This document shows positions 2,789 through 38,940 of a DNA stretch of 38,940 nt, piece after piece. How positions within the stretch are numbered: position 1 is the first letter of the stretch; every line of letters starts with the position of its first letter. The position numbers and the translations under genes are program-made. Source of the stretch: Cyanophora paradoxa CCMP329 (lineage: Eukaryota; Plantae; Glaucophyta); assembly GCA_004431415.1 (NCBI GenBank), contig QPMI01000394.1:1-38940 (forward strand). The letters are read 5' to 3'. The notes beneath the pieces are model-generated. The model was given only the letters and a program-made list of their open reading frames with translations, searched no databases and had not been told where the DNA came from.

Positions 2789-2819
<31 letters not shown>

Positions 2820-8800: not shown

Positions 8801-10799
8801 CCCCGCTGCCCGCGGCGCCTCGTGGGGACCCACCCGCCTCACCCAGGTCCTCTCCAACGTGCGCGTACCCCCCGGGCTCCCGCCCCCTGCCCCCCGCCCC
8901 CTGACAACGCTGTACCCCCAGCTGCTCTCGAACGCGGTCAAGTTCAGCTCGGGCTGCGCCGGCGGGGAGGGGGATCCCCCCGGCATCCTCGTCACGGTCA
9001 CCTTCGTCGCCCGCGTCGGGTGCGCGCCGTCCGCCCCGCTCCGCTCTGGCCGGGCGGCGCGGGCGGGCGACGGCAGCCGCAGGGCGGAGTGCGTGGTGCG
9101 GGTGGAGGTGGAGGACTCCGGGTGGGGATCAAGCAGGAGGACCTCCCCAAGCTCTTCCAGCGCTTCTCCCAGGCCCGCTGGCGCCGGCGCCCCGCTGGCG
9201 CCAACTGTAGGAGTCGAGCGCCCTCTGACGCGGGGCGGCTGGGGCGGGCAGGTGGACAGCTCGTTCTCGCGCCGCTGGGAGGGCTCCGGCCTGGGGGCGC
9301 GCCCTCTTCTCTTCTTCTTCGTGCGCCTCGGGCCTTAGCGTGTCTAAGCTTCGCGCCCGCAGCTGGCGATCTCGAAGACGATTGTGGAGCGCTGCGCGGG
9401 GCGGGAGCCGGCGAGCAGCGCCGAGCACGGCGCCGGCACCATCTCCGTCCGCTCCCAGGTGCCGGATGATGTTCTTACTATCGATTCGAATACATATAGC
9501 GCGATTCAATGCATATGTTTGTCGCAGTTCGGCAAGGGCTCCGTCTTCTCGTTCACCGTGGCGCTGGAGTACCCCCCGGGGGCCTCCCCGGGCTCCGAGG
9601 CGGGGGTGCCCCCGGCGCCGCCTGAACCGGACCCGCCGGAGCACACCGCCGGCCCGGTCGCCGTGCCGCTCCTCGCCCGCCCCTTTCTCCGCTCGCTCCT
9701 GGAGCGGTTCCTGGAGGGTGCGGGGGCGCGCGCCGCGCCCTGCGGGGCCGCCGGCGAGCTGGCGCCGCTCGCCGCGCGCCTCGCGGGGAGGGCGCCCGCG
9801 TCCCCTGCGCCCTCCTCGACCTCGCCTGCCGGGGCGCCCCCGCCGCCCTCGCCGCCTGGGTGCGTGCGCTTGATCTCGGGTGCAGAGAAGTGAGGGTGAC
9901 GCGGGGCGCAGGAGGCGGCGGGCCCCCGCTGGTCGCCATCCTCCCGGGCGACGGGCGCGCCCCGCCGGCCGGCCCGGGCCCGGACCCCGCCGCGTGCCTC
10001 CGGCGGCCCGTCTCCCGCGCCGCCGTCGCCGCGGAGCTCGCCCGCCGCCTCCAGACGCCGGGCCCCGGTCCCGGACCCGGCCAAAGGCCCGCCGAGCCCG
10101 CCCCAGCACAGCCGGCGGCCGCGTCCCCGCCCCGCGCGCGGGCGCCGCACCGCCCCCTCCGGTTCCTCGTCGTGGAGGACAACCCGGGTGCTTATGCGCC
10201 CTCTTGCTCATACCCCCCAGCGCTCCGCTCAGCGCCGCCCTGCAGTGAACCAGGCGGTGGCGCGGCGGCTGCTGGAGCGGGCGGGGCACGCGGTGGACGT
10301 GGCGGGGGACGGCCTCGAGGCCCTCGCCCGCCTCGCCGCCGCCCCGCGCCCCTACCACCTCCTCTGGATGGGCCCGCCCCCTGCCCTCCGCCCCCGCCGC
10401 CCCCGCTGCTTCTTCTCTTCTGAGCGGCCGGCGCGCAGACTGCAGCATGCCGCGGTGCGACGGGTACGAGGCGACGCGCCGCATCCGGGCGATGGACGCC
10501 GAGCGGGGCACGCACACCGTCATCGTCGGCCTCACCGCCCACGGTGCCCGCCCCTCCGCCCGGCCGCGGCGGTCTCTCGTTCCTGATCCGCAGCGGGCAG
10601 CGCTGCCGGGGGAGCGGGAGAAGTGCCTCGCGGCGGGCATGGGCGCGCCCCCTCGCCCGCCCGCCCTCCCGCCACGGCTCGCCTCCTCTCACGTGCCGTC
10701 GACGCCCCCCCCGCAGACGACTACCTTTCGAAGCCGGCGAAGCGCGAGGAGCTCCTCCGCATGATCGCCAAGCACGTCCCCGGCGCCATGCATGCGTAG
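17..10799 (+). CDS. Hybrid Ser/Thr kinase - AAA ATPase - GAF - histidine kinase - receiver protein (5'-partial, dozens of short introns, several 1-nt indels)
   Basis: Spliced motifs appear in order. Kinase: [11 protein letters not shown] (~129-220), VRLADFG (~311-331), GSLAFMAPEQ (~542-571, needs a 1-nt fix), [31 protein letters not shown]: LFGREEEL, Walker A GPSGAGKT (~1445-1469), [16 protein letters not shown]: [17 protein letters not shown]...FTADRVDLL. HisKA: [11 protein letters not shown] (~8347-8380). HATPase: N box [22 protein letters not shown]2 GSGLGLAISK. REC: [32 protein letters not shown]. Stop TAG at 10797-10799. Confidence 0.93.
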
Positions 10800-11159
10800 T
10801 CCCCTGAGAATATGTAGTTGCCTTCATGTAAGAGCAAGAAATCAAAGAGCCGCGAGCCTAGGCCTCTGGAAACGCAGAAGCGCTGCGAGCTTCCTCCAGC
10901 TTCGACGAAGACTCGTCGTCTTCGAATACTTTGACGATTGAGCTTCAATGAGAAGTTGCGTATGCATGCGCTGCCAACTGCAGGCTAGCGCTGCCTTATT
11001 GATCAATGTTAACTTAGCCAAGTTAGTAATTAGCTGACAAACATATGCATTGAGAACCTGAGCAGACGTATTTAACGCAATAATCACTTATATCGATCAT
11101 GATCATCATCCGTCCTAAAGCTCGCTACATATATACATGTACTACGATACGTCTTTCTC

Positions 11160-12418: not shown

Positions 12419-12712
12419 GCTAACGCCTCTAGCTAGCTAGATCGCGTGCTCTAGCTAGTTCTCCGACCGCCGGGTGCCGCCGTTGGAGCCTTGCTGGTGC
12501 GGTGGTCGGACGGGTACCCCCCTGCGAGTAGTTCCCCCCGGGCAAAGTCGCCGGGGCAAAGTCGCCGGGGCAAACTTGCCGGGGCGAAGTCGCGGTTTCC
12601 GGAGCGCAGGATCTGGAGCTGTGTTCTGCTAGCGTCCAAGTGCTGTCGGCGTGGCAAGCGGTCAAAGTGCTGTCGGCGTGGAAGCGTGGCACGTGGCGCT
12701 CGAGAAACGCCA
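12419..12712. promoter_or_regulatory. Dispersed intergenic cassette copy 1 (14-bp gggcaaagtcgccg array, aagtgctgtcggcg x2, CACGTG)
   Basis: Near-identical to 15817-16034, to 19116-19204 (truncated) and partly to 23951-24060. It lies just upstream of a putative gene start. The regulatory role is inferred. Confidence 0.55.
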
Positions 12713-13619: not shown

Positions 13620-14006
13620 TGCGCTACCTCAGTAGCTCTGAAACCCTGACTTCAATTAAATAGTGCACGCCTCCGCCTCGCCTATCGCCGGAGTCGACAT
13701 TAGCAGTTGACGACGCTCAAATGGCAGGCGCGCGCTTTAGGCGAGAAAGCGCCATCGCTGAGCTACATGAAGCTCTCCACGCGTACATTCATGGGTTGCC
13801 GCTGCCCACAAGGGAGCCGACAAGTCGACAACCGGCATCTTCGATGACAGGTGCATGCACATGCAGTTTTGCGGTCAAACCAGAATTGAGGAGAAACAGA
13901 TCAAAAACCAAACCAGAACCAAGCTCGCCAAGATGTTCGAACCAGGGTGAAAGTGTCCAAATGGATTCCTGGTGCGAGGGTATCCGGGATTAGCTATGTG
14001 TCACTT

Positions 14007-14238: not shown

Positions 14239-15143
14239 AAATCGTGCGCACACATACATATGTTATTGAGTCCGTTCTGCTAATCCTTATAATCTCTGCG
14301 AAATGCACTTGCAGTTTGCGAAATGCGAGAGCGCAATCCCAAGTTCTTCGAGAGCCTTGAAACAAAGTAGTTTGAATTACACAGCTCTCTCGTCAAGAAC
14401 TGCTCCACGTGCACCAGCACAAGACGAGAAGCACATGTTGGTGTCGCATGCAGGTAAAAACCATTGCACGTTAATCAACACATGAATTAATTGAATGTAT
14501 ACGCAGGGTTTCTATTCGCTGTTCCCTCTTATGCAGTACGTACACTACCAGGAATCTCGATAAATATAGCCAGCGAACAGATCTAGAGCGAAGCTTACAG
14601 ACGGTATATCTTTCCAATAGACTATTACCATCCGGACTTAAGCATTTCCTTGCCTCCCCAAAACTCTATTGCTAGAATAGTTATAGCAATCAGAAGGTCA
14701 GGTACATATGCACGCAGACATGCAGCTTGTTAAAGATCCGGCCGCGGAGGTAAGGCTCCTAGGAAACGGTACAGGTAGAATTTGTAATGTAGAACTTAGG
14801 TAAGGCTTGGTAGCCCGAGTGTATACGTAGTGGTATCCTGTTCGTGTCGTAGATTTGTTGTGTAATATGATGTGTTAAATATATTTGAATCGTTGTGTAA
14901 AGTTTCGGATTTCCAAAATTCGTGCTGCACTACGGCGCCGGCTTCGACTTGGATCCGAGACGAATGCGACCAGCATGACTACTATATAGTTCACGTCTCC
15001 TGCTACTCAGAATTCGAATTCGAGAAAACAATACAGCAATCTCTGTGCAGAAGAATCTGTGTTTGGCTAGTGCGCATGGCGTCGGCGACCACGAATAAGA
15101 TGCAGCTGCGGACCCGTACTAGGTCCTAGGGGATTTGCACTGG

Positions 15144-15772
15144 CTAGGATCCGGAAACGGTCGCCAGGAAGGGCACGTGCTCGATTTTCGGGACCACCTC
15201 ATGCCTCGCGACGTAGAACAAATCATCCGGGAATGGCCCTGTACTCGACGCCTGTGCACATGCACGCGTGAATTCGGGAATGCCGCATCAGAAATCAAGG
15301 TAAGAAGCAAAGATCGCTTGCACCGGCGGCTCGAAGCAACGGCTTTCTGGATCGTACCAATAGAGCGCAAGCCCGCTAACATTGCCTACAGAGTTGCATT
15401 CGCAGTCCAGGTCGAAGTAAGCCTGGATCAGAAGGTCTGTCTGCCACGACATAGAAACATCTATCCTGACGCGCACTGGCCCTGCCTGTTGAGATCAGGG
15501 CACACAATCAGGGGCAACGATGCCGGGTTGCAATTGCACGTGTGCACCCGTCTTTTCAGTGACGCGTAGCGGGGAAGGCCGGCAGTCACCGAGAACCCGC
15601 ACCTCGACTGAGCTGCCCCGTGCACGAGCCGCGGTCGTGGCGCGTATAGAGCAATCAGCACTTCCGACTCTGCGATCTGCTCTGCTGTCGGCGGCATGCG
15701 CAGCTGTCCCGCTGTCACTCCTGACTTCCTTGCAGCTTTGGTAGCGAGCTGTTTTCGAGGTACTTTCTGCAT
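15144..15772 (-). CDS. H3-tail-mimic family protein, copy 1 (2 introns, one 1-nt indel)
   Basis: MQKVPRKQLATKAARKS (PRKQLATKAARKS is H3 16-28 exactly) is followed by PTAEQIAESE..VEVRVLGDCRPSPLRVT|GPVRVRID..LALYWYDP|ASSTGPFPDDLFYVARHEVVPKIEHVPFLATVSGS*. Confidence 0.8.
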
Positions 15773-15816
15773 TCTGGAACGCAGTCCGACAGCGAGCGAA
15801 CCGAGCGCCGCCGTCT

Positions 15817-16034
15817 TTGGAGCCTTGCTGGTGCGTGGTCGAACGAGTACCCCCGGCAGGAAGTTCCCCCGGGCAAAGCCGCCGGGCAAAGTCGCCGGGG
15901 CAAAGTCGCCGGAGCACTGTCGCGGTTTCCGGAGCGCCGGATCTGGAGCTGTGTTCTGCTAGCGTCCGAAGTGCTGTCGGCGGGGCAAGCGGTCAAAGTG
16001 CTGTCGGCGTGGAAGCGTGGCACGTGGCGCTCGA
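15817..16034. promoter_or_regulatory. Dispersed intergenic cassette copy 2, between divergent genes
   Basis: Homologous to 12484-12712; flanked by an ATG on the minus strand (15772) and an ATG on the plus strand (16134). Confidence 0.6.
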
Positions 16035-16133
16035 AAAGGTGCGCCGGATGCCTTCTTTCCGCATGCGCACCCATATATAGCGGCCTTGCGCGTGCGTCCG
16101 TGCGGCCTCCCTTGACAGTAGCGTCTCTCAGGG

Positions 16134-17131
16134 ATGAATGCACACGAGGAGACGAAACGCAAACTCGAAGAGAGCGAACAGGAGGTTGATTATGAGCTTG
16201 AGACGGAGGAAAGCGGCCCGGCGCGTGCGGAGAAACGTGCGCGAGATGAGGCGTCGCGGCGGCAGCTCGAGAAGCAAGCGTCAGCGGAAGCGGTGGCGGA
16301 GATTCATCGACGTCTGCGGAAGGCTGAGGAGCGGGCTGCAGCCGCCAAGAACGACGCAAGAGCTCTCAGCGACGACGAAGAAGTGGAAGAGCGGCCAAAG
16401 GAGGTTCCGTGTCGTACCTGTGTCGAGAACCCATCATCCCACTGTGCATATGCGCCATCATCCTGGGTATCGAAAGTGCCAGCACTTTGCACGAACTCCC
16501 TATGGACGTTCGGCCCTTCGCTAATTTGGCGCTTCGGATTGCCAAGCTCCACCGGCAGTCGCGGGCCTTCGACATCCTCCCCAGTCGGGCGAGGACAGCG
16601 ATCGCGAAGGAGAAGGTGAGGACACGAATTACTGCACCACCCTGATTGAATCTCTGCCGTCGGAGGGGAGGGGAATCTGGACCTGAACAGTGCGCATGGC
16701 CTTCTGTTTTAATTTACCCCGAGAAATTTTGCTTTCACAGAGCCAGTGATCATGAGCACAGGGGACTCTGGGAGGACATCTGTATGGTCACCCTCGAAGG
16801 TTTTCAAGTGGTGAAGAGCCCGCTGCGCATGTTTCAGCTCTGTGATGGTGGTTTCCGCGTTTGCGATCCTCTTCATCCGTCCGTGGATGAAGCGCTTCGC
16901 GACCTCTGCGGACTCTGCCTCAGCAACAGCGACCTCGAGTTCTTTAGGGACATTTCCAAGCGCCTGAAAGAAAAGCAGGCCACTGAACAAGCACGCAAGC
17001 ACATTTTGCATGACTTTTGACATCTTGCATGTACCTTTGAACAAGCACGCAATAGTATACTGCAGCTGAAGCTTGAGCACCTCAACCTCGGAACCAACCT
17101 CAACGGGGCCGGGGCAGGGGGGGGCACGTAA
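16134..17131 (+). CDS. Hypothetical multi-exon protein with N-terminal acidic coiled coil
   Basis: MNAHEETKRKLEESEQE...EKRARDEASRRQLEKQ; the following ORF segments at 16409 and 16646 are joinable through GT-AG introns. The 3' end is uncertain. Confidence 0.5.
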
Positions 17132-17406
17132 TTGTATTCGGAAACTTTAACTCTTCGATGGTTTTCGCATACATAGTTCTCTGGAGAATTCCAACTCTTC
17201 GATTTATGCGATCGCGGCCGCGGCAGCCATGCCCCAAGGCGCTCTGAATTCGAATTCGAGAAGACAATACTGCTACCAATCTCTGTGCACAAGAATCTCT
17301 GTTCGGCTAGCTTGCATGGCGCCGGCGGCCACCGCTAGCGTGCATGGCGCCGGCGTGCAATTCGAATAAGATGCAGCTGTCGGACCGCTAGGGGCCTTGA
17401 CACTGG

Positions 17407-18046
17407 CTAGGATCCTGTAACGGTTGCCAGGAAGGGTGCATGCTCGACTTCCGGGATGATTTCCTTCATTGCCACGTAGAACAGGTCATCCGGGATGGCC
17501 CTGGACTCGACGCCTGTGCACATGCACGCGTGAATTCGGGAATGCCGCATCAGAAATCGAGGTAAGAAGCAAAGATCGCTTGCACCAGCGGCTCGAAGCA
17601 CCGGCTAGCTGGGTCGTACCGATAGAGCGACAGCTCGCGGCGATCAATGGGCACCGGTGTGCAGCGCAATTCCCGGTACGCTTGGGCCAGAAGATCTTTC
17701 TCCCACGTCTTTGAAACATACAGCTTGATTCGCACAGGCCCTGCGCGGTTGCAATTAGGGCGCACTGGCAGAGCAACGATGAACCGGACACATGTGCACC
17801 TGTCATTTCAGTGACGCGTGGCCGAGAAGGGCGGCAGTCCCCGAGAACGCGCACCTCGACAGAGCTGCCCTCGAGCTCGTTCTCGAGCCGCGGTAAACGT
17901 CGCGGCGTGTATAGAGCAATCAGCGCTTCCGACTCTGCGACCTGCTCCGCTGTTGGCTCTGGATCGGGTACGAATCGTGAAGTAGGCGGTGCTTTCTTTG
18001 GTCTGGGTCTAGTGCCGAGAACTTTGCGGGGAGCTTTGCTTGACAT
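17407..18046 (-). CDS. H3-tail-mimic family protein, copy 2
   Basis: MSSKAPRKVLGT..PTAEQVAESEALIALY..VEVRVLGDCRP..|GPVRIKLY..LSLYRYDP|..DDLFYVAMKEIIPEVEHAPFLATVTGS*; same two introns as the other copies, with one 1-nt indel in the last exon. Confidence 0.78.
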
Positions 18047-18145
18047 TGCTTCTAGAGATGCGCGGCCGCAACGTTAACCCAATGCCTTAATGTTTACCCC
18101 CGGTGGGATTACCCCTGGGCATACTGACCGTGACTTCGTTCGCGA

Positions 18146-18218
18146 TTCAGCTCTGTGATGGTGGTTTCCGCGTTCGCGATCCTCTTCATCCGTCCGTGGA
18201 TGAAGCGCTTCGCGACCT
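18146..18218 (+). repeat. 73-bp fragment duplicated from the 3' exon of the 16134 gene (16833-16905)
   Basis: ttcagctctgtgatggtggtttccgcgtt.gcgatcctcttcatccgtccgtggatgaagcgcttcgcgacct is present at both positions. Confidence 0.85.
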
Positions 18219-18371
18219 TCGCGAAATCAATGCCGATACATTAAATCGCGACGAAAATTCGAATTGACAAAACGAAGTACAGCATTCCCTGTTCAAATAT
18301 CGTGCATGGCGTCGGCGGCCATGAATTCCAATAAGATGCAGCTGTCGGGCCGCTAGGGGCCTTGGCACTGG

Positions 18372-19003
18372 CTAGGATCCGGAAACGGTCGCCAGGAAGG
18401 GCGCGTGCTCGACATCCGGTATTACCGAATTCCTCGCCACGTAGACCAGGTCATCCGCGAATGGCCCCAGCGGACTCGACGCCTGTGCACATGTTCGCGT
18501 GAATTCGCGAATACCGGATCAGAAATCGAGGTAAGAAGCAAAGATCGCTTGCACCAGCGGCTCGAAGCACCGGCTAGCTGGGTCATACCGATACAGATCC
18601 AAAGTGCGGAAATCGATTACGTACGCATGACAGTTCAGGTCCATGTACGCACGGGCCCGAAGAACTCTCTGCCACGACATTCGAAAGTTTGAAATATCTA
18701 TCGTGACTCGCACAGGCCCTGCGCTGTTGCGATTAGGGCTGTTGCGAGGCGAAGATGCAACCGGGTTGGACCTGTCATTGAAGTGACGCGTAGCGGGGAA
18801 GGCCGGCAGTCACCGAGAACGCGAACCTCGATAGAGCTGCCCTCGTTCTCGAGCCGCGGTCGCGGCGTGAATAGAGCAATCAGCGCTTCCGACTCTGCGA
18901 TCTGCTCTGCTGTCGGCTGTCGGGACTCTGTCGCTGCTGACTTCCGTGAAGCTTTGGAAGCGAGCTGCTTGCTGCTTGCTGCTGCTTCGTCGCCGCGCTG
19001 CAT
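18372..19003 (-). CDS. H3-tail-mimic family protein, copy 3
   Basis: MQRGDEAAASSKQLASKASRKSA (about H3 18-29) followed by PTAEQIAESE..IEVRVLGDCRPSPLRVTSMT|..LDLYRYDP|..EHAPFLATVSGS*; the start codon is uncertain. Confidence 0.78.
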
Positions 19004-19115
19004 GTTCGAAATCCGCAGGAATGCGCAGGCGCACCGTGATCTACTGCGCGCAGGCATGCGCAGGCATGAAATCATGAGCGCCAGACTCGATCTACTCAAT
19101 CTGCTGGGTGCCGCT

Positions 19116-19204
19116 TTTGGAGCCTTGCTGGTGCAGTGGTCGGACGGGTACCCCCCGGCAAAGTAGTTCCCCCGGGCAAAGTCGCCGGGGCAAAGTCGCC
19201 GGGG
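19116..19204. promoter_or_regulatory. Dispersed intergenic cassette copy 3 (truncated after the 14-bp array)
   Basis: ttggagccttgctggtgc..gtacccccc..gggcaaagtcgccg x2, homologous to copies 1 and 2. Confidence 0.55.
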
Positions 19205-19518
19205 ACACTTGGAGCGAAGACGCGAGGAAAGCTCCAGTACGCAAATTTAGAGGTATGCAAACCCGCCCGAACCGTGGAATCAACCATTTGAACGCACTGC
19301 CGCATACGCAGGTCAAAACCTCGTCCGGAGCGCCCTGCAGCGGAGCACCTCGGGTTTAAAGCTCCGGTTCTCACAAGTAGAGGTAGGCAAACCTGCAGAT
19401 CCGTGGAATCAACCATTTGAACGCAGCGCGGCACACGCAGGTCGAAACCTCGGCCGAAACCTCTTGCAACTCCGAGCTCAAGCGGGTACTTGGGGAGAAG
19501 CGAGAAGCTCCCGCAGTA

Positions 19519-22007
19519 ATGCACACGCAAAGGCTGTTCACTCGAGCCCACGCACTTGCAGATGTGCGCCCGTGCCTGTGCTGTGTGAATGCACGTGGAC
19601 TTGCAGCTGAGTGTGCAACAGGTTGAGAACACGTTCAGAGCCCTCCTTTTGGATTCGAAGAACACTCCGCTCTTCATTCGTCCGAAGTGGCTTTTCGGTT
19701 CGCCGAAGGAGCAGGGAATATCGTTCCTTGGAATCGCGTCACCCAATTTCCGGATATGCATTGACAGTACCTTCCTCGCATCGGACAACCACAGAGCAAC
19801 TTTGGTGCCTCTGTTTGATCCAAGCATCGTCTACTGCGGGGTGTGGAGTAACAGCACGGAGCACGTCGAAAGGATTCGTAAAACTCTTGATATCCAGTGG
19901 CCGTCACTTCGGGCGATCGAAATCGACGACCTAGCCACCGCAGCGAAGCTGGACGGAACCTTGCAGAAAGACAGAAGACAAAAAGGTCTCAAATCCGGAA
20001 TCCAGGATCTTTCTACGGAATTTTTGCGTAAGGCGTTCGAGAAACCTGAGGATTTCAGATTCTTCGGGACTGGCTGGGACAGCGCCGAAGTGGACGAGAC
20101 GAGGCTGGCCTTCGCTTTTCGGGAATTGGAAACAGGCATCGGGATTATCAAAGTCATTTTAAAAAGGGTGGGGTTGAAGCTGACTTCTGCAAAGTTTTCG
20201 CTATCACTATCTATCGCTCTCGCAAACTTCCGCTATCGTTTAGTATCCGGAGACGAGCAGGAGGTTTGTCCTCGACGTCTGTGATAAAGAGGTGAGCTTG
20301 CTTTACTTCTGCTTTTTCAACCCGGCTGTTCTGCTGTTAATTATAATCGCAGGATGCACGTGTTGCTCTGGAGCTGAGCAAGTCTGAATGCGTCGACGGT
20401 GGAAAAGATGCATCCGCTCCGACACTGACACCTTCGATGCAAAAAGAAAAGGATGCTTCGAACAAACCTTTCCCTCCCATTTCATTCGTCCCAGCGCAAG
20501 GTGCCTCAAATCTCCAGTCGGAATGGTCTTCAACCTATGGAGGCTGTCACAAACACACTGGTGACACGATGAAAGACAGTCTATCTATCCCTCGGATAAG
20601 TTGAATTCCGGCTCGCAGGTACCGGTTCTCAGAATGCCGAACTTCGGGATCCGGAGGAGATTCGATGCTTGCAGCAGCAGGTGAAATCACTTCAGGATGA
20701 TAACGCCTTACTTCGACAAGCGAAAGAGCGCGTCGACGGTAAATGCCTTTTTTGCGTTCAGCTATAACTGCTTTCAGTTAATTAGTATCCGCGCGTAATC
20801 CCCGCTGCAGCCCCCGACTGCAGCGGCTGCAAGGAAAACGCTTTCCTGGTCGCCCAGCTGCAGCGGCTGCAAGGTCGAATCGCTCAGGGGCGCCTTCGTT
20901 CATTCTTCTTTTGAAACGTCTGCAGGCCTCCAGAATGAGAATGCTTCCCTGCTCGCCCAGCTGCAACGGCTGCAAGGTCGAATCGCTCAGGGGCGCCTTC
21001 GTTCATTCTTCTTTTGAAACGTCTGCAGGCGTCCAGCATGAAAATGCTTCCCTGCTCGCCCAGCTGCAACGGCTGCAAGGTCAAATCGCTCAGGGGCGCC
21101 TTCGTTCATTCTTCTTTTGAAACGTCTGCAGGCGTCCAGAATGAGAATGCTTCCCTGCTCGCCCAGCTGCAACGGCTGCAAGGTCAAATCGCTCAGGGGC
21201 GCCTTCTTTCATTCTTCGTTCGAAACGTCTGCAGGCATCCAGAATGAGAATGCTTCCCTGCTCGCCCAACTGCAGCGGCTGCAAGGTCGAATCGCTCAGG
21301 GGCGCCTTCTTCCAGTCTCCTCTTGAAACGTCTGCAGGCGTCCAGAATGAGAATGCTTCCCTGGTCGCCCAACTGCAGTGGCTGAAAGGTCAAATTGCTC
21401 GGGGGCGCCTTCTTTCATTCTTCGTTTGAAACGTCTGCAGGCATCCAGAATGAGAATGCTTCCCTGGTCGCCCAGCTGCAGCGGACCAATGGTGTTTTTT
21501 TAGACTGCTTTTCGATTTAGGTCTCGATTTGACCGTTTCCCGTGCGTGTAGCTGTGAATGCAGCTCCCCAAGCGCAACTGCAGCGGCTGACCGGTTTCCA
21601 CTTCGCCGTTTTCTCGGAATTGGGATTTCTGAGTGACTGATAATGACTGCAGCTATGAATGCGGGTCTCCAATCTCAGAAGAAAGCTCTTCGTGGTACGC
21701 TATCTCACTCCTTCGCGGTACATTCAATTTCCGGCCTTGAGTATGGGTATCTTAGATGAAGTCACGACGCTTCGTGGTACGGCGGTTTTCCTCCCCGATG
21801 ATTTTATGAACGTCGCGGTACATTTATGTTTACACCTCGTTCGCGATTCTTTGTAAATGTCAGCTGAAATTGCGACACTGCGAGGTATGGCGGTTCCCCT
21901 CGGATGCATTTTTATTTACTCCGATGCTGATATTGTGATCAGCAAAAATCGACGACCTGGAGGATGCTGAATTCCAGCGCCTGTTCGAAGGCGTGCTCAA
22001 TATTTAG
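19519..22007 (+). CDS. Degenerate DEDDy 3'-5' exonuclease-like domain (WRN/EXD/MUT-7 type) plus C-terminal coiled coil
   Basis: The large exon (19589 ORF) follows the WRN-exo pattern: PLFIRPKW..ISFLGIAS..LFDPSIVYCGV..IDDLATAA..GIQDLSTEFLRKAFEK..GWDSAEVDETRLAFAFRE. Downstream small exons give heptad repeats and end KIDDLEDAEFQRLFEGVLNI* (22005-22007). The start is uncertain. Confidence 0.62.
20836..21491 (+). repeat. 103-bp tandem repeat (51-nt exon + 52-nt intron), about 6.5 units
   Basis: Exon gcgtccagaatgagaatgcttccctgctcgcccagctgcaacggctgcaag (GVQNENASLLAQLQRLQ) alternates with intron gtcaaat...tctgcag; exons start at 20926, 21029, 21132, 21235, 21338 and 21441. Confidence 0.92.
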
Positions 22008-22228
22008 ACGTGTGATCTTCGTTTAAATCACAATTGAATTTCAGTATTGCACTGAACCTGCTGTTCAAATACGATTTAATCGGGAAGCTTCCACACAGTG
22101 CATACTCAGGCCACGGTCATAGAGGAAGGAGGGGGGGGGAAGAGAAGGGGGGGGGAGTGCCGAACTTACCGCGGCCGGCAAAAAAAGCCGGCTTGGCGTG
22201 CAGTGCTGCCACAACTCGAAGCTGCTGG

Positions 22229-22861
22229 ATGGCGAAAGTGAAAGAGAGAGCGCGTATGTCTACAGGCGGAAAAGCTCCTCGAAAGAACCTCGCACAGCGG
22301 CCGCGGCCGCCGACAGCGGAGCAGGTCGCGGAGTCGGAAGCACTGAATGCTCTTTACGCGCCACGACCGCGGCCCGAGAACGAAGGCAGCTTTGTTGACG
22401 TACACATTCTCGGCGACTGCCGGCCTGCCCCGCTACGCGTCACTGCAATGACAGGTGCAAATGTACACCGATTCACCGTTGCTCTGCCAGTGTGCCGTGA
22501 ACTCAACAGCGCATGCGCAGGGCCTGTGCGAGTCACGATCCGTGCTTCGGACTCGAATGCGTGGAAGAGCGAGCTACTGGACCTGGCGTTCGAGGAGCTG
22601 CACTGCAGTACGCATGTGCACCTCGAGGAGCTGGTGCTGTATCGATCTCGGTACGACCAAGCAGGCTGGTACTTCGAGCTTCCGGTGCAAGCGATTGTTG
22701 CGTCTTACGGTGATTTCTGATGCGGATCTCGCGAATTCACGGGTGCGCGTGCACAGGCGTCGAGTCCGGGGCCATCCCCGGGAGATCTGTATTACGTCGC
22801 GAGGAGGGATATCATCCCGGAAGTCGAGCATGTACCTTTCCTGGCGATCAATCAGGAATAG
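22229..22861 (+). CDS. H3-tail-mimic family protein, copy 4 (K9M-like tail)
   Basis: MAKVKERARMSTGGKAPRKNLA aligns to H3 1-21; introns 22455-22520 and 22685-22756 (GT-AG); ends GDLYYVARRDIIPEVEHVPFLAINQE*. Confidence 0.85.
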
Positions 22862-22960
22862 TTGCAAGTGCCGGCATCCCTTCCCTAGTCCGGATTTCGT
22901 AGCCAAAAATACGCGGATGTATTATACGTATACGCGGCGGCACGGATACAACAGGAGCGC

Positions 22961-23736
22961 CTAATTGCCAGCGCTGTAGTGCAACACGAGCGCCTCAAAT
23001 TCTCTCCTACGGCGCTCTATGTAGTCTCCATCTAAATCTAGATCTAGAGGGTTGCCTCGCATTTCGCGCTCTGCGAAGTCCAGCAACCAGATCCCGCACT
23101 AGCGAGCGTGGTCAGCCGTTGCCACTGGCCACGGGCGGGAGTGAAAACAGCACTAACCTGATGGCCGTCATGCTGCACTGCTCGCTGTACCGATTGGATG
23201 ACGTCAATTTCATGTTTCAAGAGAATTCTTGCGAGCTTGCGCGGAGCCTTCGCGCCAATGCTGTCGTAGTATCTGCAGACCTTGCCGTCGATAACCAAGA
23301 GTGTCCAGTGTCGTCGGTTGTTGACGGGGACGAGAGCGCGTGTGCTGGTGCCATTCAAGTGCTCGAGTAACGCTTCTATGTAGGATTCAGCGTCGTGGAG
23401 GGCGAGCGGATGTGCGATGAACCAATTCTGTGTGACTGCCTCCTTGGCCGCCGCCGCGCGGATGCAAACGAGCGCGCTCTCGATTGCGCTCGATGACAGC
23501 CACAAATCCCGGCTGCAGCTGAAGCTGAGCTGATGCCGAACTAGATCTGCGCTAACGATCTTCGGCCGCGCCTTGACTGTGCCCAGCTCCTCCAACTCAG
23601 AAGAGGGCTCTGGGTCACCACACTGCAGCTGTCTTTGCCGCCGTATGCGCTTCTTTAAAACTACAGGAGAGGGCTTCGGATCTGAATCATCACATTGCAT
23701 ATCCCGCCGGCGCTTCGCTGCCTTCGCGGAGGCCAT
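22961..23736 (-). CDS. Ulp1/SENP-family (peptidase C48) cysteine protease
   Basis: WLSSSAI..VPVNNRRHWTLLVI..YYDSIG..QHDGHQ|CGIWLL (intron 23099-23157) gives the His, Asp, Gln and Cys catalytic set; basic NLS-like N-terminus (KRRR, KKRIRR). Confidence 0.88.
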
Positions 23737-23950
23737 CTGCGAGGATCCGGAGAACGGACGACCTAGGCCTGCAGGGGAACAAGCCCGCATGAGTTCCAGC
23801 GGCGAACTGTAAAGGCAGAGCACGAAGCGGGCGTGCACATTCACGAATGCCGAAGTCGACGGCTATATCTATCAACGTTCAACGTTCAGCGCCGTTGATC
23901 ATGACAGGCCACGCGGCGCCCGAGTCCACGTCAGCGAGGCTGCCGGCGAT

Positions 23951-24060
23951 GGCTAAGCCTCCGGCTAGCTGTTTTACGCGCTCTAGCTCGATCTCCGACC
24001 ACCGGTCACCGCCTGAAAGCTTCGAGACTTGCTGGCGGCATTGAGCGCACGTGTACCCCC
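23951..24060. promoter_or_regulatory. Diverged copy of the left part of the intergenic cassette, between the Ulp1 gene and H3-mimic copy 5
   Basis: gctaagcctccggctagct..gctctagctcgatctccgaccaccgg..gtaccccc resembles 12419-12520. Confidence 0.45.
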
Positions 24061-24228
24061 ACTAGTCCCATCCCGGGCCGTCCGGGCCGTCCCGGACGAG
24101 ACCAAGATCCAGCAATCTAGCGTCTGCACAAGGCAGCGCGGCGCGAGCTCGAGGAGCGCGACTCCCCAGTTTCCAGTTTTCCGACAGGATCTAGCGACTC
24201 TCGGAAGTTTCGAGGCGCGCTCGCTCTA

Positions 24229-24864
24229 ATGGCGAAGACAAAACAAAAGGCGCGAAAGTACAACGGATCGATTCCTCAGAAGAAAATGCCTACCAAAGCT
24301 TCAAGAAAGCGGAAGTCAGAGCCGGAGCCCGACCCGTCAAAGAAGCAGGTGCCCGAGAACGAGGGCAGCTCTAAAACTGTCGAGGTGCGCGTTCTCGGCG
24401 ACTGCCGGCCTGCCCCGCTACGCGTCACTTCAATGACAGGTGCATGCCCGGTTGCATCGTTGCTTCTGCTAGTGTGCCGTGATCTCAACAGCGCATGCGC
24501 AGGGCCTGTGCGAGTCACGATCCGTGCTTCGGACTCGAATGCGTGGAAGAGCGAGCTACTGGACCTGGCGTTCTTGGAGCTGCACTGCAGTACGCATGTG
24601 GATGACCGCGGCACTCTGGCGGTGCATTGGTACGACCCAGCAAGCCGAACCTTCCAGTCGTTGGTGCAAGCGATCTTTGCGTCGTATACGTACGGTGATT
24701 TCTGCTGCGGATCTCGCGAATTCACGGGTGCGCGTGCACAGGCGTCAAGGGCGCAGGGGCCATCCCCGGATGATCTGTTTTACATTACGAGGAATACAGT
24801 TGATCCGGCCGTCGAGCATGTACCTTTCCTGGCGGATCCGGACGCAGTGATAGAGCTTGACTAG
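24229..24864 (+). CDS. H3-tail-mimic family protein, copy 5
   Basis: MAKTKQKARKYNGSIPQKKMPTKASRK (H3-like K4, K9 and K27 positions) followed by the same conserved domain; the two inferred introns happen to be open in frame. Confidence 0.82.
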   Translation: MAKTKQKARKYNGSIPQKKMPTKASRKRKSEPEPDPSKKQVPENEGSSKTVEVRVLGDCRPAPLRVTSMTGACPVASLLLLVCRDLNSACAGPVRVTIRASDSNAWKSELLDLAFLELHCSTHVDDRGTLAVHWYDPASRTFQSLVQAIFASYTYGDFCCGSREFTGARAQASRAQGPSPDDLFYITRNTVDPAVEHVPFLADPDAVIELD

Positions 24865-24969: not shown

Positions 24970-27213
24970 TTACACGATAATAATGCATTTCGAGAGGGAC
25001 TGCATCTCTAAGATACGATTTTTTATCGTCTTGATCTCATTGTCGACATTATCGCTCTGTGCTTTGATCAGAGCGTTCTTCTGGCGCACATGATCGAGAA
25101 GTGACGCAAGCGCTGTTTCAAGAACGTCGAAGGACGTCGCTTGCAATTGCTGGTTGAGTGTTCCTAGGGCACGCGTTGCGTCGTAGTTGACATCGGTTTG
25201 AGCACCAGAAATCATGAGTGCCATCTGCGCAGCAGGAAGCTCATTTATGGCACCACAAATCTGGAAACTGCAAAAAAGAACGTCTGCGAAAGAGAGGTGC
25301 AGACGAACCTTCTTATTAAGCTCATGTAGCTGTGCGAGGAGGTTAACAATACACCTTATTCTCTCTCCAAGTGCCCGGTCGAAGACAACTTCGTTGCGCA
25401 AGTAGATATCTACAAGATGCAGCTTTTCTAAGGATGGCGCCTTCTCGAACGCCCCGACCACACACTGAGCAACATATTCTGGGATTGCGCGCATTGCATC
25501 TGTTCGCTGTTCATAGCCAGTCACTCCAACCAGGCGGAGGGTTTCCAGAGATGAGCACTGCGAAGCGATCTTCGTGATGGAGGTGACCAGCCAGTTGCGC
25601 TCGACACGTAAGACTTGTGCTCCATGAGCGTCAGAGGGTGCAAGCGGAAGGATCAGCTCGCGAAGGCTGCTGAATCGTAATGTCTTTGCGAGTTCCGCGA
25701 GACGATTCGGTGATAATTTACGGAGCTGTGCCACGGTTGCATGTGGAACTGTGCATGCCACCAGGTCCAGCGTGATAAGAGATTGACACTTCCGCGCTGC
25801 TGATAAGATTTGCTCGTAATCACGCCCGTCCTCCAGCGTGAAGCGCAACGTTTGCGTGAAATTGCTTAGATACCGTTCCATCTTATTTATATTCGTGCTG
25901 TCGCTCTTAATGATGCAATTGATGAACGAAATATGTTTGAGACAGCACGAGTCGGGAGAGCAGAAGAACTGGACGACTGGATGCGAAGCTGGGCGGATGC
26001 GAGTTGCTGTGAATTCGACATGGAGCTCCTCCGTGCATTCCCCCGCCGTATGATGCAATACCAGAGATGCCGGCCGCGGTGGGGCCATTGACGAGTCATT
26101 TTGGATGTCCCGAGGCTCGTCAGATATCTGCAATCCAAATCAGGCTGCTCGAATATAAATAGTGGCAGGTCGTGCACATTGAAAATCATGGACGCGGGCG
26201 CTGGACGAAAGAGTCCTGGGGTTTTCAGCTCTAGGCCTTCGCTTGTTAGACATCCTTTGATGATGACTTTCTTGGCACTGAAAGCCCAGTAGGAGAAGGA
26301 ACCCGCAGCTTCTTGAAACATGATGGTTTCTTGGTCGACACATAGCTCTTCGACCGTCCCAAATGACGTGTCATCAGGCCCGCAGTCACGAAAGCTGCAA
26401 ATTATGAAAAAACTGTTTGTCAGCTTCTGGTTCTGAATGGATTACGTAAACGAATACGTAGCGAATTTGGACTTACTGAACGGGCCCCCCGAATACCTGC
26501 GTTGGTAACAGAGTTCGATACGGCTCGATGCTGGCTATTTCCTCCGTTTCACGGTGTGCGCGAAGGCTTGCGCTTGCCTTGTCGTCCAGAATAAGACGGC
26601 GAGGCGCCGTCTTCAAGATAAGGTGGACCCAGTCAAAATGAATGGCCTCAAGGTCGTCGGAACCACACCCTGTGCAGATTCCTAGGCACCGCTTGGGCTT
26701 CTCAAAGAAACGCTGTATGCTGTCCAGGAGGATTGCAAGTTTCTTAAACGTCTTTGGCTGCTTCCATAATTCCGAGGCAAAGCTGGAGGAAGCGAATTTG
26801 ATGCTACCGCCATGCTCTAGGATCCACTTCGCGCGAATCCACACCCTTTCAAGCAGGAGAGCCGGAATTGTGTCAAGAAAGATGGTCGCGGTGCGGACGC
26901 GCTTCAAGCCATTGCCCTGTTCCACGAGAATCCTGTAGAAGCGCCGGCTGCTACTCCACAGAGCTCGCACGGACTCGAGGCGTTCATTAGGAACCATGCT
27001 GGCAATTATGGCGATGGCATCGTCTGGAAGATCATTTATCGTTATGGTTGCCTTTCTTGTCGATTCGAGCCTGTGCGGCGAATGTTAGAGAGGGGTTCTT
27101 TCGCTTGCTTTGCCTCCGAATGAATATGCGTACCGCTCATCTACTTCTGGTACCGGTGGCGACGTCTTTAGTAGATCCATGTGTAGGTTCGAATCCCCGC
27201 CCGCAGGCTCCAT
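24970..27213 (-). CDS. F-box-like / LRR (RNI-like) protein
   Basis: Spliced N-terminus ..TINDLPDDAIAIIASMVP..WSSSRRFYRIL (F-box pattern); repeats SLITLDL, SLRELIL, SLETLRL, SLEKLHL. Confidence 0.7.
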
Positions 27214-27586
27214 ACTGCAAGCCGATTCCCTGCATTATGTGAGCCGATTTGGTCCGCGAATGCGCGTCAACGTGCATGCGCACTGCAGCTGCGCATTTGT
27301 CGGCCCAGCACGTTTTGGTGTCTTCCCAGAGTCAGCGGCCAGATCCAGACTCTCGTCCCTGCGCGCGCAGAGGACAACAATCAAGGCACGATAAACGCAC
27401 CCACGCCAATATTAATACGACGCACGAGCGTTTCCTTCGTCTACGCTGCATCGCAAGTTTGAAATTTCTCAGAGGGGTACGGTAAGGATACGGTTAGGGG
27501 GTTCTAAATGGGGAAGGGGTACGAGCTACGGGATTTGCGCGGGAAGCCGTCGTTTTACTCGGAAACGCGTATTACAAGCTTTAAGT

Positions 27587-28527
27587 ATGTCGCAGCTTGA
27601 AGACCCCATGGCCGGCCTGGTATCGCAGTCGAATCAAAGCTCTGAAGATAAGGTGCGTCGCACTCAGCGGCCAGCGGATAAGCTGCTGGCTTAAGCTAAC
27701 CGGCCACGCATGCGCATGCGCAGTGCACGACGGTGAAGCGGGCGCGGGAGGAGATCAATGGCGAGCGTGCGAGCAAAAGGCAAACTTCGGGCACAGGGAA
27801 CTCCAGCGAAAAAAGGCCCTTAAGCTTGCTAAACAGTGAGCACCTGGTGCGAACACTACTCCACTCTAGATCTACGACTCGGCGAAAAGTATTCTTCATA
27901 ACACGGTTTGAACGCTCGCACTTTTAGAAACAGTTTGAACACGCGCTTGATTTCACGTACGGGCTTCCCTTCACATTTCACAAGTTGATGGTGCGAATCA
28001 AATAGTAGTGATGAGTTTTCCTTGACCGTCGGACGTCTGTGCGAACGAGTGCATGTACAGCACGACAACCAGCGGAACATTATGCGGCAGCTTCGAAGTG
28101 ATGTGATGGCGCTATCAGCTAATGTGAGCCGTGGCCCGCACTCACTGATGGTCAACTCTCTGAAATGCTCGAATTCCAGGTCAGTTCTGTAATCGAAAAG
28201 GAGATCGCTGATATAAACCAACCGGTCGCCTCCGAAGAGTGTGTGCTCATGTTAAACTCTCAGCAACTGGAAAAGCTATTTCAAAGCCTCAAGAATGCTG
28301 TTATTTGTGAGATCGAATGCTGTCAAAAGCGAATGGTAAAGACAGATTTGGTGATTATATAGTCATGCCGACGTCTGTCAGTTCACGTGCGTGCACGACA
28401 GATCAAAAGGGAATTCGACGAATTCAACCATCTTGAGAGGGAAATCGAAACCGTGAATGTGTCAATCTTAAGTCTGCAACGTCAGGCACTATCGTCGCTT
28501 AAGACCGAGGGCGGAAGTCAGGAATGA
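27587..28527 (+). CDS. Hypothetical multi-exon coiled-coil protein
   Basis: MSQLEDPMAG..|..VKRAREEINGERASKRQ..; last exon IKREFDEFNHLEREIETVNVSILSLQRQ..QE*; GT-AG introns. Confidence 0.45.
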
Positions 28528-30933
28528 AGTAAGAAGAGATCCCATGTGCGAACATGCGACTTTGTCTTTGTATTATTTGTTGCGAGCAAGCAAAAGCTAG
28601 CTGAGTATGTAACTTGGCATATTGTAGCGCTAGCCAAGCGAGCTCGATAATCTTACATACTGCACACTGCACCAATTCCCTCGCTGCATTTTATTGATCG
28701 TGGAGAAAAGCAGTTGAATTAGAGGATAAAAAATCGCGTAGACCCTTGTTGGTATCTATGAATTGCCCCTGGGCCAGGAATGACGTGCCGCCTCGTATTT
28801 CGACTCTCCAAAAGCAATAAAGCCGAGAAAGCGTATTTTGATGTTCGCAGAGCATGTTGACGGCTTGCGTAAGCTCCTCCAGACCAACTCTGGTACGCAC
28901 AGCGATGTTAAGTTCAACATGAGCCAGTCTTGGACCCGACTCCAACAGCGCCTTCTTTCATTGATCAGAAACACGGAATCGCATTTGAATGAGTGAAACA
29001 GCGAACCCGCAAGATTTCTGCCGGATGTGGAAAGAAGCCTTCGATGCTGAGCAGGCGAACTTTCGTTCGCATTGACCGAAGGAGGGCCATAAAACTGTCT
29101 TGGTGAAGTGTTCGGCTTTCTACATTCTGATGGTAGCGAGTGCCTAGATCTCGTACAAGCAGATCACATTGTTCGAGCGCCGGGAGTTGCTCCAAGTTCG
29201 CTCGGATTTCTTCGAAAGATACACCGATTGCTCTGTGCACGTCTTCTGCTGGATAACTCCGCGTCTGCTGAATTGTGGGTGGAACGATGGCCCGGCACGA
29301 ATGCACAGATACGCACTTCGATATGAATTCTAACATTTTTAAGCATCGGGAGCGGTCGCAAAATTTTGAAGTGGGTCTCGCAGCCGATCTGACGTTGCCG
29401 AAGTAAGCAACTCGAACACCGAACAACAATGCCGAATCGCACCTGAATCTCGAGACTTTCGAGGTTAGCCATTGTGCTGATACGCTCGACCGTCGACCCA
29501 GTGCTTTTATACGCAACTATCAACGCTCGCACACTTTCCGGATTGAGCGTCGAGAGCGCTGTGTCCTCCCGAACTGTGCATGATAAGCGTTGCGGGGAGA
29601 GTTTGACTATCGCGTCCTGCAGTAGATATCGATGTCAGTAAACACTATCTGCGCTGATGGGATATTACGTGCATCTGATGCATACGTACCGCCTGATCAG
29701 CTGACAGGAAAGGCGGTGTTAACTCAATGGTCCTCTGGCCCGCATGCTCGCATCGTACCATGGACAACTCGCGGAGCCCTTTCAAATTGACCTCAGCGGC
29801 TGCACGGAGAAAGATGGCGGCAAAGCGTTCGTATGCGGTCACTGATAACCGGCCTTCTGGATAGTTCCGCAGCGCCTTCGTGAATGCGCGTGCGACATCT
29901 AGAGTGCTGACAAATTGTTCGCTGACTTCGTCATACAACACGTGTTCACATTTCTCCCAGTAGTCCCAGCCCTCGAAAATGACATGCACAGAATTCCGCA
30001 GAAGCTTCGCCTTTGCCACGTCCTCGATCACATCTGAGCTCGAGGCCAGTTAGAACACCGGTTTTTTGAAGTGGAATTGATGCAATTGTCGCGATGTCTG
30101 TGCAAATTTCGCGCACCAAATATTGACCTCAGAATACTGAAGCATAGCTTGAATGCAAATTTCCTCTCTGTTCGGTGCGAGTAGAGCATGTCGGGGAACT
30201 GCTCGAACCGGTCATGCCAAAATGAGCTGACGATGACGTTCTCGCAGCCCGCGAGTTTCTTTTCTCTGAACAGAGCTCTGACTGCGCTGAGGAGCTCGTT
30301 GGCTGCGGGCCCCATTTCCACAAGATCGGAACCGTTCAGCCGGAGCACAGGCCAGTTCTTATCTTTGAGAAGCTGCGTGAAGCGTTTGTTGATGCTGAAG
30401 AACTGGTGTTTGCACGCTTCGGAGAGATCATCGTAGACGAGCTCTAAGATGCGAACGAGGAGGCTATCCGGCATCTGGTCGAAGGGGCGGGTTGCTGCTC
30501 TGCATGCGCATGCTCCTGCTCATGATCACGGTTTGCGCTGATGCATCGCTCAGCATCAGCGCCAGCTTGCCCGAAAGGGGGTGGTTCGCAAGCGCTGGCA
30601 CCTCTCTGTCGCTGGCTCCGCGCCCGCAGCTTGGAGCAAGTTTGAAGCGGCTGCCGTGTCTTGTGCAACCGGCTGCTCTGCCCACTGCAGCAGCCGCTGA
30701 TCATGAAGCTGAAGGACCTCCGCTTCTGCAGCGGACGCCAGCTGCAAGTCTGCTCCTGGGGTGTCTGCAGCTGCGCAACCAAGCTCGCAACCAAGCAACA
30801 CAAAGATGTGAGAGTACGCACCTTGTAACGCTGCAGCCCTATTAGTCGCATGTTCAGGATCGCTCTCCTCCTCGTTCACACGCGCGCGTTTCGAGTCGTG
30901 CGCGTCTCGCGCGGCGTTCGCCGCGCAATCCAT
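28499..30933 (-). CDS. F-box-like / LRR protein
   Basis: MDCAANAARDAHDSKRAR..; FDQMPDSLLVRILELV..FFSINKRFTQLL (F-box); LRR-like NLKGLRELSM, NLESLEI, LPALEQCDL. The 3' end is approximate. Confidence 0.65.
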
Positions 30934-30949
30934 CGCCGGTTGCAATGCT

Positions 30950-30973
30950 GCGCTACCGCGCTACCGCGCTACC
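30950..30973. repeat. (gcgctacc)3 in the ~120-bp spacer between divergent F-box genes
   Basis: Three exact 8-bp units plus a degenerate fourth. Confidence 0.8.
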
Positions 30974-31056
30974 GCACGAGCTACCGCTGAGCGGCTAGTT
31001 GCAACGGAAGGAGGGTACACGGCTCTCAGCCACGCCCAGCTCGCAGCACGCGAGCG

Positions 31057-34464: not shown

Positions 34465-34473
34465 TACACTGTT

Positions 34474-38592: not shown

Positions 38593-38940
38593 ATGCCCGC
38601 ATCAAGGTAGGAAAATGATCATGAAAGCCCGCTGAATTCATATCTGCGATTCTTAGTTCTTTCGAGTTCGTTGAACATTGTAATTATACTTTGCAGCAAA
38701 ACTGCCAAGCGTGGCACCGGAAACAAGGCCCCGCGAAAGGCATTCAAGAGCTCCGGCGCCAGCGGCCTCAAGACCAAAGCCGCGCGGAAAAAGGCTGTGG
38801 GCGAGGGCGGAGTGAGAAAGCCGTTCCGGTCGGCCTGCTCTCTTCCCTACGTTTTATTTTCAAGAGAAAGTCCCGGCACGTGAGAATCGCGCGCTCGCGC
38901 AGCCATCGCCCTGGGACGGGGCAAAGCGCGAAATTGTGAA
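38593..38940 (+). CDS. Divergent histone H3 variant (3'-partial)
   Basis: Exons 38593-38606, 38697-38828 and 38903-end give M..[50 protein letters not shown]. With one extra G in the G-run this continues AKREIVK, matching H3 KPHRYRPGTVALREIRK. TATATAA lies just upstream. Confidence 0.8.

Follow-up and report, generated by a model that had tools for sequence, protein, structure and literature searches.

Five tandem genes in Cyanophora paradoxa join slices of a histone H3-like tail to an orphan domain

Introduction

What are five small genes of the alga Cyanophora paradoxa for, if each begins like the tail of histone H3 and then continues into a domain that is not a histone? We analyzed the window that holds them (38,940 nucleotides of contig QPMI01000394.1) and asked where the tails come from, what the domain is, and whether the copies have been kept as coding genes.

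Results

We searched the window with tblastn and nhmmer and found exactly five copies, here called A to E, and no sixth. All five stand at the coordinates and on the strands that a first-pass annotation of this DNA had claimed, with A, B, and C on the minus strand and D and E on the plus strand (Table 1); the tBLASTn check of family size that it proposed thus agrees with five copies, for the window. The two intron positions claimed to be common to the copies also held, as both splice sites are shared by all five. Both introns were deduced from the sequence alone. Intron 1 is in phase 1 (53 to 66 nt) and putative intron 2 in phase 0 (72 to 78 nt), and both are GT-AG in all copies. In 5 of 5 copies the length of intron 2 is divisible by three, and this intron is conserved more than exon 2. 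The conserved domain, put earlier at about 110 aa, measured about 107 aa (about 24 + 53 + 30).

The assembly shows three of the five copies intact, and the frame of copy E stays open across both introns. Copy A lacks one base of a G run in exon 1 (15616-15619), and copy B lacks one base of a C run in exon 3 (17492-17494), so that both frames are broken as assembled. A third single-base shortfall in a G/C run of this PacBio assembly lies in an H3-like gene (38918-38921). The shortfalls in A and B may be either assembly error or decay. We found no annotated gene model for these copies, though the Cyanophora proteome was among the proteins searched. The annotation also mis-models a neighboring F-box gene.

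The cluster sits in an island of 45 to 60% GC that adjoins a gene of 70 to 79% GC. The same island holds F-box/LRR genes and orphan open reading frames (ORFs), and a Ulp1-like protease ORF (weak Pfam match) lies between D and E. A stretch of 136 nt is 97% identical between D and E. A noncoding element is repeated upstream of A and C and is possibly a shared promoter.

Table 1. Positions in the window of the exons and other features of the five-copy family.
Feature	Position	Strand	Remarks
Copy A exon 1	15548..15772	(-)	H3 14-38-like tail, linker, first domain strands
Copy A exon 2	15324..15481	(-)	intron 1, 15482-15547
Copy A exon 3 to stop	15144..15251	(-)	putative intron 2, 15252-15323
Copy B exon 1	17800..18046	(-)	H3 14-32-like tail in register, linker, first domain strands
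Copy B exon 2	17586..17740	(-)	intron 1, 17741-17799
Copy B exon 3	17407..17513	(-)	putative intron 2, 17514-17585
Copy C exon 1	18772..19003	(-)	H3 18-31-like tail, linker, first domain strands
Copy C exon 2	18555..18718	(-)	intron 1, 18719-18771
Copy C exon 3 to stop	18372..18482	(-)	putative intron 2, 18483-18554
Copy D exon 1	22229..22454	(+)	H3 1-24-like tail, exact register, linker, first domain strands
ATG (Met) at H3 K9 position of copy D	22256..22258	(+)
Linker of A-D (D coordinates)	22310..22372	(+)	conserved in A-D, absent in E
Copy D exon 2	22521..22684	(+)	intron 1, 22455-22520
Hypervariable patch of exon 2 (D coordinates)	22607..22648	(+)	50-59% DNA identity, 10/10 pairs
Copy D putative intron 2	22685..22756	(+)	72 nt; in-frame TGA aligning with TGC in copy E
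Copy D exon 3 to stop	22757..22861	(+)
Copy E exon 1	24229..24439	(+)	H3 1-28-like tail, RKRK cluster, without linker
Copy E exon 2	24503..24663	(+)	intron 1, 24440-24502
Copy E exon 3 to stop	24742..24864	(+)	putative intron 2, 24664-24741
Repeated noncoding element	15801..16037	.	directly upstream of A
Further copies of this element	19103-19224; 12470-12706		first copy upstream of C

We compared the N termini with 177,635 PDB sequences. All matches were to the histone H3 tail only, and they were significant for A and D and weak for B, C, and E. Residues 1 to 24 of D matched H3 1-24 (E value, 2e-5), and residues 3 to 27 of A matched H3 14-38 (E value, 1.5e-4). A profile of the A-D tails also found H3 (E value, 8e-6); taken singly, B (0.45), C (0.3), and copy E (0.04 to 0.1) gave weak H3 matches. 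The tail motifs read as the first-pass annotation had quoted them, and each copy does join a different piece of the H3 tail to the domain. Copy A is identical to H3 14-28 at 14 of 15 residues and keeps K14, K18, K23, K27, and S28. Copy B keeps K14, K18, K27, and A29-P30. In copy C, 11 non-H3 residues precede a tail piece with K18, K23, K27, and S28. Copy D carries A1, K4, M9, S10, K14, and K18 and has kept the STGG and APR runs, and copy E keeps A1, K4, K9, K23, and K27 and has lost S10. Each copy thus holds a different subset of the H3 lysines, and B, C, and E have eroded tails. All copies have 6 to 12 Lys/Arg in their first 35 residues. These matches indicate that the tails derive from H3.

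PHD-type readers of the H3 N terminus need A1 and K4 at an exact distance from the start. In D and E, A1 and K4 lie at the exact H3 distance from the start codon. The claim that no histone fold follows was upheld, as the PDB matches end near H3 36-38 and Pfam gave no histone match. We considered the A-D linker as a remnant of the H3 alpha-N helix and found no support for this, as it has no match to H3 alpha-N.

Copy D alone has a Met at an acceptor-lysine position in H3 context, at K9, a residue on which the first-pass annotation was silent. It may be a K9M-like change, or its codon may be an alternative start; B begins with Met at about the same position.

We found several signs of coding constraint. 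Coding indels keep the frame in 10 of 12 cases (P about 5e-4), whereas most intron 1 indels break the multiple of three. Differences between the tails are mainly synonymous (pooled pN/pS, 0.30, a value biased downward by the choice of segments by amino acid similarity and drawn from nonindependent pairs), and B and D use different codons at 7 of 10 identical tail residues. The linker is conserved more than the tails (pooled dN/dS, 0.32). In the domain, exon 3 has an omega of about 0.5 (2dlnL of 5.0 versus omega = 1), and exon 2 has an omega of 0.8 to 0.9, which is indistinguishable from 1. No copy has a stop in exon 2 (neutral simulation, P of 0.013), and the copies lack stops even though dS between them is 0.3 to 0.7. 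The hypervariable patch gave no support for positive selection (pN = pS = 0.57). The neutral decay of the tails that the first-pass annotation had named as a possible refutation is not what we found; frames and tail residues are constrained. Judged by these substitution and indel patterns, coding constraint has acted on the family.

Searches and models used single exons or natural open frames. The domain had been called unknown, and no known family matched it in any search that we ran. In a length-independent HMMER search, a profile of exon 2 (64 positions) had no relatives among 1.84 billion cluster representatives. Its matches to a bacterial RHS protein (P0001) and a bacterial repeat protein (P0002) were sums of weak repeats with best stretches of 5.8 and 12.8 bits, and we rejected both. 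Pfam had no match to the domain, and a PDB profile search found no relative. The open frame of copy E had no homologue among proteins of 116 to 369 aa, and D residues 1 to 75 had none among 11 candidates, a set from which canonical H3 itself was absent and which therefore carries little weight. Viral contigs, metagenome contigs, and phages held no relatives, and the K9M-tail DNA pattern was not present in viral contigs. A Verrucomicrobiota locus (L158) has about 10 residues in common with the family, but they belong to an enzyme-like ORF of 427 aa that is otherwise unrelated, and we rejected the match as chance.

The domain downstream of the tail is predicted to be strand rich. An AlphaFold model of copy C exon 2 has one helix and three strands (pLDDT, 70), and a model of the unspliced frame reached a pLDDT of 35. 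The Foldseek check proposed earlier for the spliced proteins, run on the unspliced model and the exon 2 model, gave nothing significant; E values for exon 2 were never below 0.1, and the best resemblance was a weak one to the AMPK C-terminal domain (E value, 0.14). We take the domain to be a small orphan, probably of alpha/beta type. A ubiquitin-like or Crinkler fold was unsupported (hhalign probability below 1% for each exon versus 78 ubiquitins); the LxLFLAK and HVLVxxP motifs are not in the domain, and Pfam was blank for the CRN N terminus and ubiquitin. The domain runs to the stop codon in all copies, with no toxin or nuclease module after it.

Discussion

The architecture, in which small tandem paralogues carry H3 tail slices on an orphan domain, is new. 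The family resembles histone H3 and its variants in tail sequence over parts of residues 1 to 38 but lacks the alpha-N helix and the histone fold. Host histone mimics (G9a/GLP, SETDB1, ATF7IP, and LIG1) and viral ones (influenza NS1 and SARS-CoV-2 ORF8) likewise have an H3-tail-like motif in a nonhistone protein. These are mostly short motifs within large enzymes or viral proteins, whereas in Cyanophora small paralogues carry at their N termini slices of 14 to 28 residues that appear to come from an H3 gene, with a different slice in each. Copy D resembles EZHIP and the K-to-M oncohistone mimics in the Met that replaces a methyl-acceptor lysine. EZHIP is mammalian and disordered, mimics K27M, and inhibits PRC2; in contrast, D has K9M in a direct copy of H3 1-24, followed by a predicted folded domain. 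The Crinkler/RHS ubiquitin-like header is similar in size and, by eye, in a loose strand-helix-strand pattern, but it is N-terminal before a toxin or nuclease, whereas the Cyanophora domain is C-terminal without a toxin module. PAF15 (PCLAF) is also a small protein with an H3-like N terminus. D exon 1 scored 12.9 bits against Pfam PF15715 (E value, 0.19), under the 23.4 cutoff, and we rejected membership, with no sign of common descent. PAF15 is not known to carry a comparable domain or to form a diversified tandem family.

Our leading explanation, which we hold tentatively and at a little under even confidence, is that the genes encode small nuclear adaptors or decoys that mimic histones and have diversified in specificity, in a tandem family restricted to Cyanophora. 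According to this model, an H3 N-terminal tail (about residues 1 to 30/38) was joined to the small alpha/beta domain, and the chimeric gene was then duplicated in tandem with patchy gene conversion. The products would be nuclear proteins of about 160 to 170 aa whose free tail may be bound or modified by H3 enzymes and readers, and the domain, which carries a hypervariable hairpin, may bind a partner. We infer the decoy or bait role: such proteins would sequester or divert the writers and readers of H3, with A, B, and C aimed at the K14-K27 region and E at K4/K9. D could act as a K9M-type pseudo-substrate that inhibits H3K9 methyltransferases, by analogy with K-to-M peptides, which inhibit lysine methyltransferases; H3 K9M sits in the G9a active site (10.1101/585729). 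In host proteins, histone-mimic motifs serve as functional docking sites (10.1101/2025.01.21.634156). A K27-decoy role is weakened because PRC2 homologues were not found in C. paradoxa and H3K27me3 was inconclusive (PMC5405695). The frameshifts in A and B, the absent gene models, the eroded tails of B, C, and E, and the exon 2 omega near 1 also count against the adaptor/decoy explanation.

The tail might instead be a mere basic patch for nuclear import or nucleic acid binding in functional genes whose orphan domain does the work, with no selected mimicry. This fits tail pieces that differ per copy and are partly eroded, a linker that is conserved more than they are, and the content of basic residues as the common feature, including the RKRK cluster in E. 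A basic patch does not call for the nonbasic H3 residues kept in D (STGG and APR) and in A (nearly all of H3 14-28), nor for the exact register from the N terminus in D and E, and we consider it rather unlikely. We give a distinctly smaller chance to the idea that the genes belong to a selfish element (a transposon or endogenous virus) and encode anti-silencing or targeting factors that blunt H3K9 silencing of its own island. Transposons often capture chromatin domains (10.1101/2021.11.30.470311), K9M is a change from which such an element would profit, and the GC contrast of the island and its F-box/LRR, Ulp1-like, and orphan ORFs count in favor of this idea. However, no transposase, integrase, or capsid family appeared in the 20 ORFs scanned, which cover the neighboring spliced genes in part, viral contigs and phages held no relatives, and the genes have host-type spliceosomal introns.

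Decay of a chimeric duplicate that was once or never functional, with silent copies alike through recent duplication and gene conversion, is improbable to about the same degree. It would account for the broken frames of A and B, the missing gene models, the near-neutral exon 2 beside a better-conserved intron, and the nearly identical stretch in D and E. It sits poorly with the excess of in-frame indels, the lack of stops at such dS, and the predominance of synonymous changes in the tails and exon 3; moreover, the A, B, and 38918-38921 frameshifts are all of one kind, and the annotation fails on the F-box gene as well. Least probable, and very doubtful, is that intron 2 is not (always) spliced, so that the TGA in A-D is a stop, a selenocysteine, or a read-through codon and E is the Cys form. 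The length of intron 2 in all copies, its sole indel of 6 nt, the TGA-TGC alignment, and an omega of about 0.44 when it is read as codons point this way, but that omega is not significantly below 1 (2dlnL, 2.7). As in host introns, the GT donor and AG acceptor are invariant, and a TTCAC motif that resembles a branch site lies 21 nt upstream. There was no Rfam SECIS match, the 3' flanks were no more stable in folding than shuffled versions, and D has the TGA but an unrelated 3' flank. The UGA-Cys paralogue alignment, a selenoprotein feature, holds only if intron 2 is retained.

A bolder form of the adaptor/decoy explanation, which we regard as unlikely, is an expressed array of nucleosome-free H3-tail decoys tuned to different marks, including a natural K9M inhibitor of a heterochromatin methyltransferase, that would rewire chromatin in trans for the alga or for a selfish element. 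Most of the histone mimics known consist of one short motif, and the natural K-to-M inhibitor of which we found a description is the K27M-like EZHIP. The orphan domain offers an uncharacterized fold as a target for study. If the explanation is true, the division of an H3 tail among small genes, one of which has K9M, would add a new means of controlling or subverting chromatin in trans. It would do so in an alga that branched early among the relatives of plants and in which chromatin has received very little study.

Five gene copies pair an H3-like tail with an orphan domain

We recovered, each in its place, the five gene copies (A to E) that the first-pass annotation had described as histone H3-tail mimics; a sixth was not detectable within the window. 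The two shared intron positions also held: a phase-1 intron of 53 to 66 nt and a phase-0 segment of 72 to 78 nt with GT/AG ends are common to A to E. Copies C, D, and E are intact as assembled. The other two are each a single base short: A within a run of G in exon 1, B within a run of C in exon 3. Because the divergent H3-like gene at the window end has the same kind of one-base shortfall, assembly error is a plausible source of the A and B frameshifts.

Features of the window, with the H3 residues kept in the PDB alignments of copies A to E
Feature	Position	Strand	Details
Copy A	15144-15772	-	K14, K18, K23, K27, S28
Copy B	17407-18046	-	K14, K18, K27
Copy C	18372-19003	-	K18, K23, K27, S28
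Copy D	22229-22861	+	K4, S10, K14, K18; Met at position 9
Copy E	24229-24864	+	K4, K9, K23, K27
GGKAPRK-coding stretch	14746-14766	+	Isolated, 400 nt from A, between stop codons in non-coding DNA; tail remnant or chance
Divergent H3-like gene	38593-38940	+	Separate; introns 38607-38696 and 38829-38902; frame switch in G run 38918-38921; runs past window end
Junction-like stretch	13839-13865	+	End of orphan ORF; 27-nt resemblance to family exon 1/intron 1 junction, not significant (nhmmer E = 2.6)
GC- and intron-rich gene	1-10800	+	Open frames resemble kinase/ATPase/GAF hybrid histidine kinase with receiver domain
Repeated non-coding element	12470-12706; 15801-16037; 19103-19224		Between divergently oriented ORFs
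Tandem array	20728-21589	+	About eight 103-nt units; each looks like an exon with its intron, coding for a coiled-coil-like repeat
Ulp1/C48-like ORF	23044-23844	-	Between D and E; weak match (E = 0.11); KAPRK word at 23250
F-box/LRR-like and orphan genes	24970-37000		Succession within low-GC island
Cyanophora-specific F-box family member	31057-32950		Mis-modeled in public annotation
C-rich low-complexity tracts	32962-34304		With short dispersed repeats

Among all PDB sequences, histone H3 was the sole match of each N-terminus, in agreement with the proposed tail identity; the matches of B, C, and E are individually weak. Residues 1 to 24 of D align in exact register with H3 1 to 24 (E = 2e-5), residues 3 to 27 of A align with H3 14 to 38 (E = 1.5e-4), and a tail profile built from A to D matches H3 at E = 8e-6, all against PDB sequences. 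Both D and E keep Ala1 and Lys4 at the correct spacing from the start. We infer that the simplest history is a single H3-tail capture followed by duplication and differential erosion. GC3 is 0.40 to 0.56 in the tails versus 0.95 in a host exon, so the captured tail was not copied recently from a GC-rich host gene.

The H3-like gene at the window end has a tail with an 8-residue insertion that matches H3 6 to 38 (E = 0.003), followed by an alpha-N-like stretch. This gene may encode a variant of H3 or represent a further tail fusion.

No credible relative found for the domain

As claimed, no histone fold follows the tails of A to E: similarity to H3 stops at 36 to 38 without continuing into alpha-N, and the AlphaFold model of exon 2 is unlike a histone fold. 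That model (exon 2 alone) has one helix and a three-strand meander (pLDDT, 70; pTM, 0.41) and no significant structural neighbor; the unspliced E frame gave a pLDDT of 35.

We found nothing credible for the C-terminal domain in Pfam, the PDB, or large protein collections. The exon-2 profile, run without a limit on target length, gave no credible relative among 1.84 billion cluster representatives; nor was one found in a 5.8-billion protein collection (length-limited search) or in viral, metagenome, prokaryote, or phage DNA. No support was found for a ubiquitin/Crinkler identity. P0002 (L002, 217-6837), a rejected weak match of the exon-2 profile, is a 2,206-aa bacterial protein built from ~223-aa repeats; it matches ankyrin weakly, has no family assignment, and is unrelated to the H3-tail family. 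The A-to-E family belongs to none of the families tested, and such a family is not described in the literature searched, which covered few subscription journals.

The searched collections include the Cyanophora proteome and hold no models of A to E, so the copies are unannotated. This is weak evidence against their expression, because the same annotation reduces the neighboring F-box gene to a 212-aa fragment.

Genomic setting

The published C. paradoxa assembly is PacBio based with Illumina correction and has a mean GC content of 67.6%; introns average 86 nt, and curation of the gene models is described as necessary (PMC6704402). GC content is 70 to 79% across bases 1 to 10800 of the window and drops to 45 to 60% from about 11000 onward. 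A to E lie inside this low-GC island, together with orphan ORFs, genes of F-box/LRR type, and an ORF weakly similar to Ulp1-like proteases. A EukProt model labeled Cyanophora paradoxa is 100% identical to the F-box/LRR ORF at 31057, which also has close paralogues under that label; this assigns the window to the nuclear genome of this glaucophyte. The Ulp1-like ORF has a His-Trp motif; its catalytic Cys region lies outside this frame, so the ORF may be spliced or broken. The repeated-element copy at 12470 has no H3-tail gene behind it.

Constraint, splicing, and possible roles

Decaying duplicates seem improbable. Coding indels preserve the frame in 10 of 12 cases (P = 5e-4 at p = 1/3), whereas most intron 1 indels break the multiple of three, and exon 2 is stop-free (neutral simulation, P = 0.013). 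Neutral decay of the tails, the outcome that would have told against the first-pass proposal, is not what we observed: alignable tail segments have a pN/pS of 0.30, a value from segments selected by similarity and from overlapping pairs. Pooled dN/dS was 0.32 in the linker, 0.61 in the exon-1 part of the domain, 0.90 in exon 2, and 0.58 in exon 3, and in likelihood tests exon 3 alone differs from 1. Copies D and E are 96 to 100% identical across the first half of exon 2 and A and B 99% identical across intron 2, while a 14-codon patch shows 50 to 59% identity in all pairs. This patchiness is consistent with gene conversion flanking a divergent patch; positive selection on the patch was not supported (pN = pS).

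Retention of intron 2 would explain why its length is a multiple of three in every copy and why the in-frame TGA of A to D aligns with TGC in E. However, the donor and acceptor are invariant, a branch-like site lies at the usual host distance, and no SECIS was found. Splicing is the likelier reading and retention very doubtful.

That the tail is a mere basic targeting patch is unlikely; that the products are anti-silencing factors of a selfish element has a slim chance. We tentatively favor, at somewhat short of an even chance, small nuclear histone-mimic adaptors or decoys that work like known histone mimics; the likeness to EZHIP is limited to D. H3 K9M peptides sit in the G9a active site and inhibit G9a (10.1101/585729), which makes D the sharpest case. 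Alternatively, its Met at position 9 may serve as a second start codon, but the residues upstream are conserved with E (pN/pS, 0.30), which counts against this. As adaptors or decoys, any proteins expressed would engage H3 writers and readers through the tail and a partner through the variable hairpin of the domain, and D might inhibit H3K9 methyltransferases; different paralogues would cover different histone marks. The evidence for this family comes from one locus in one genome.
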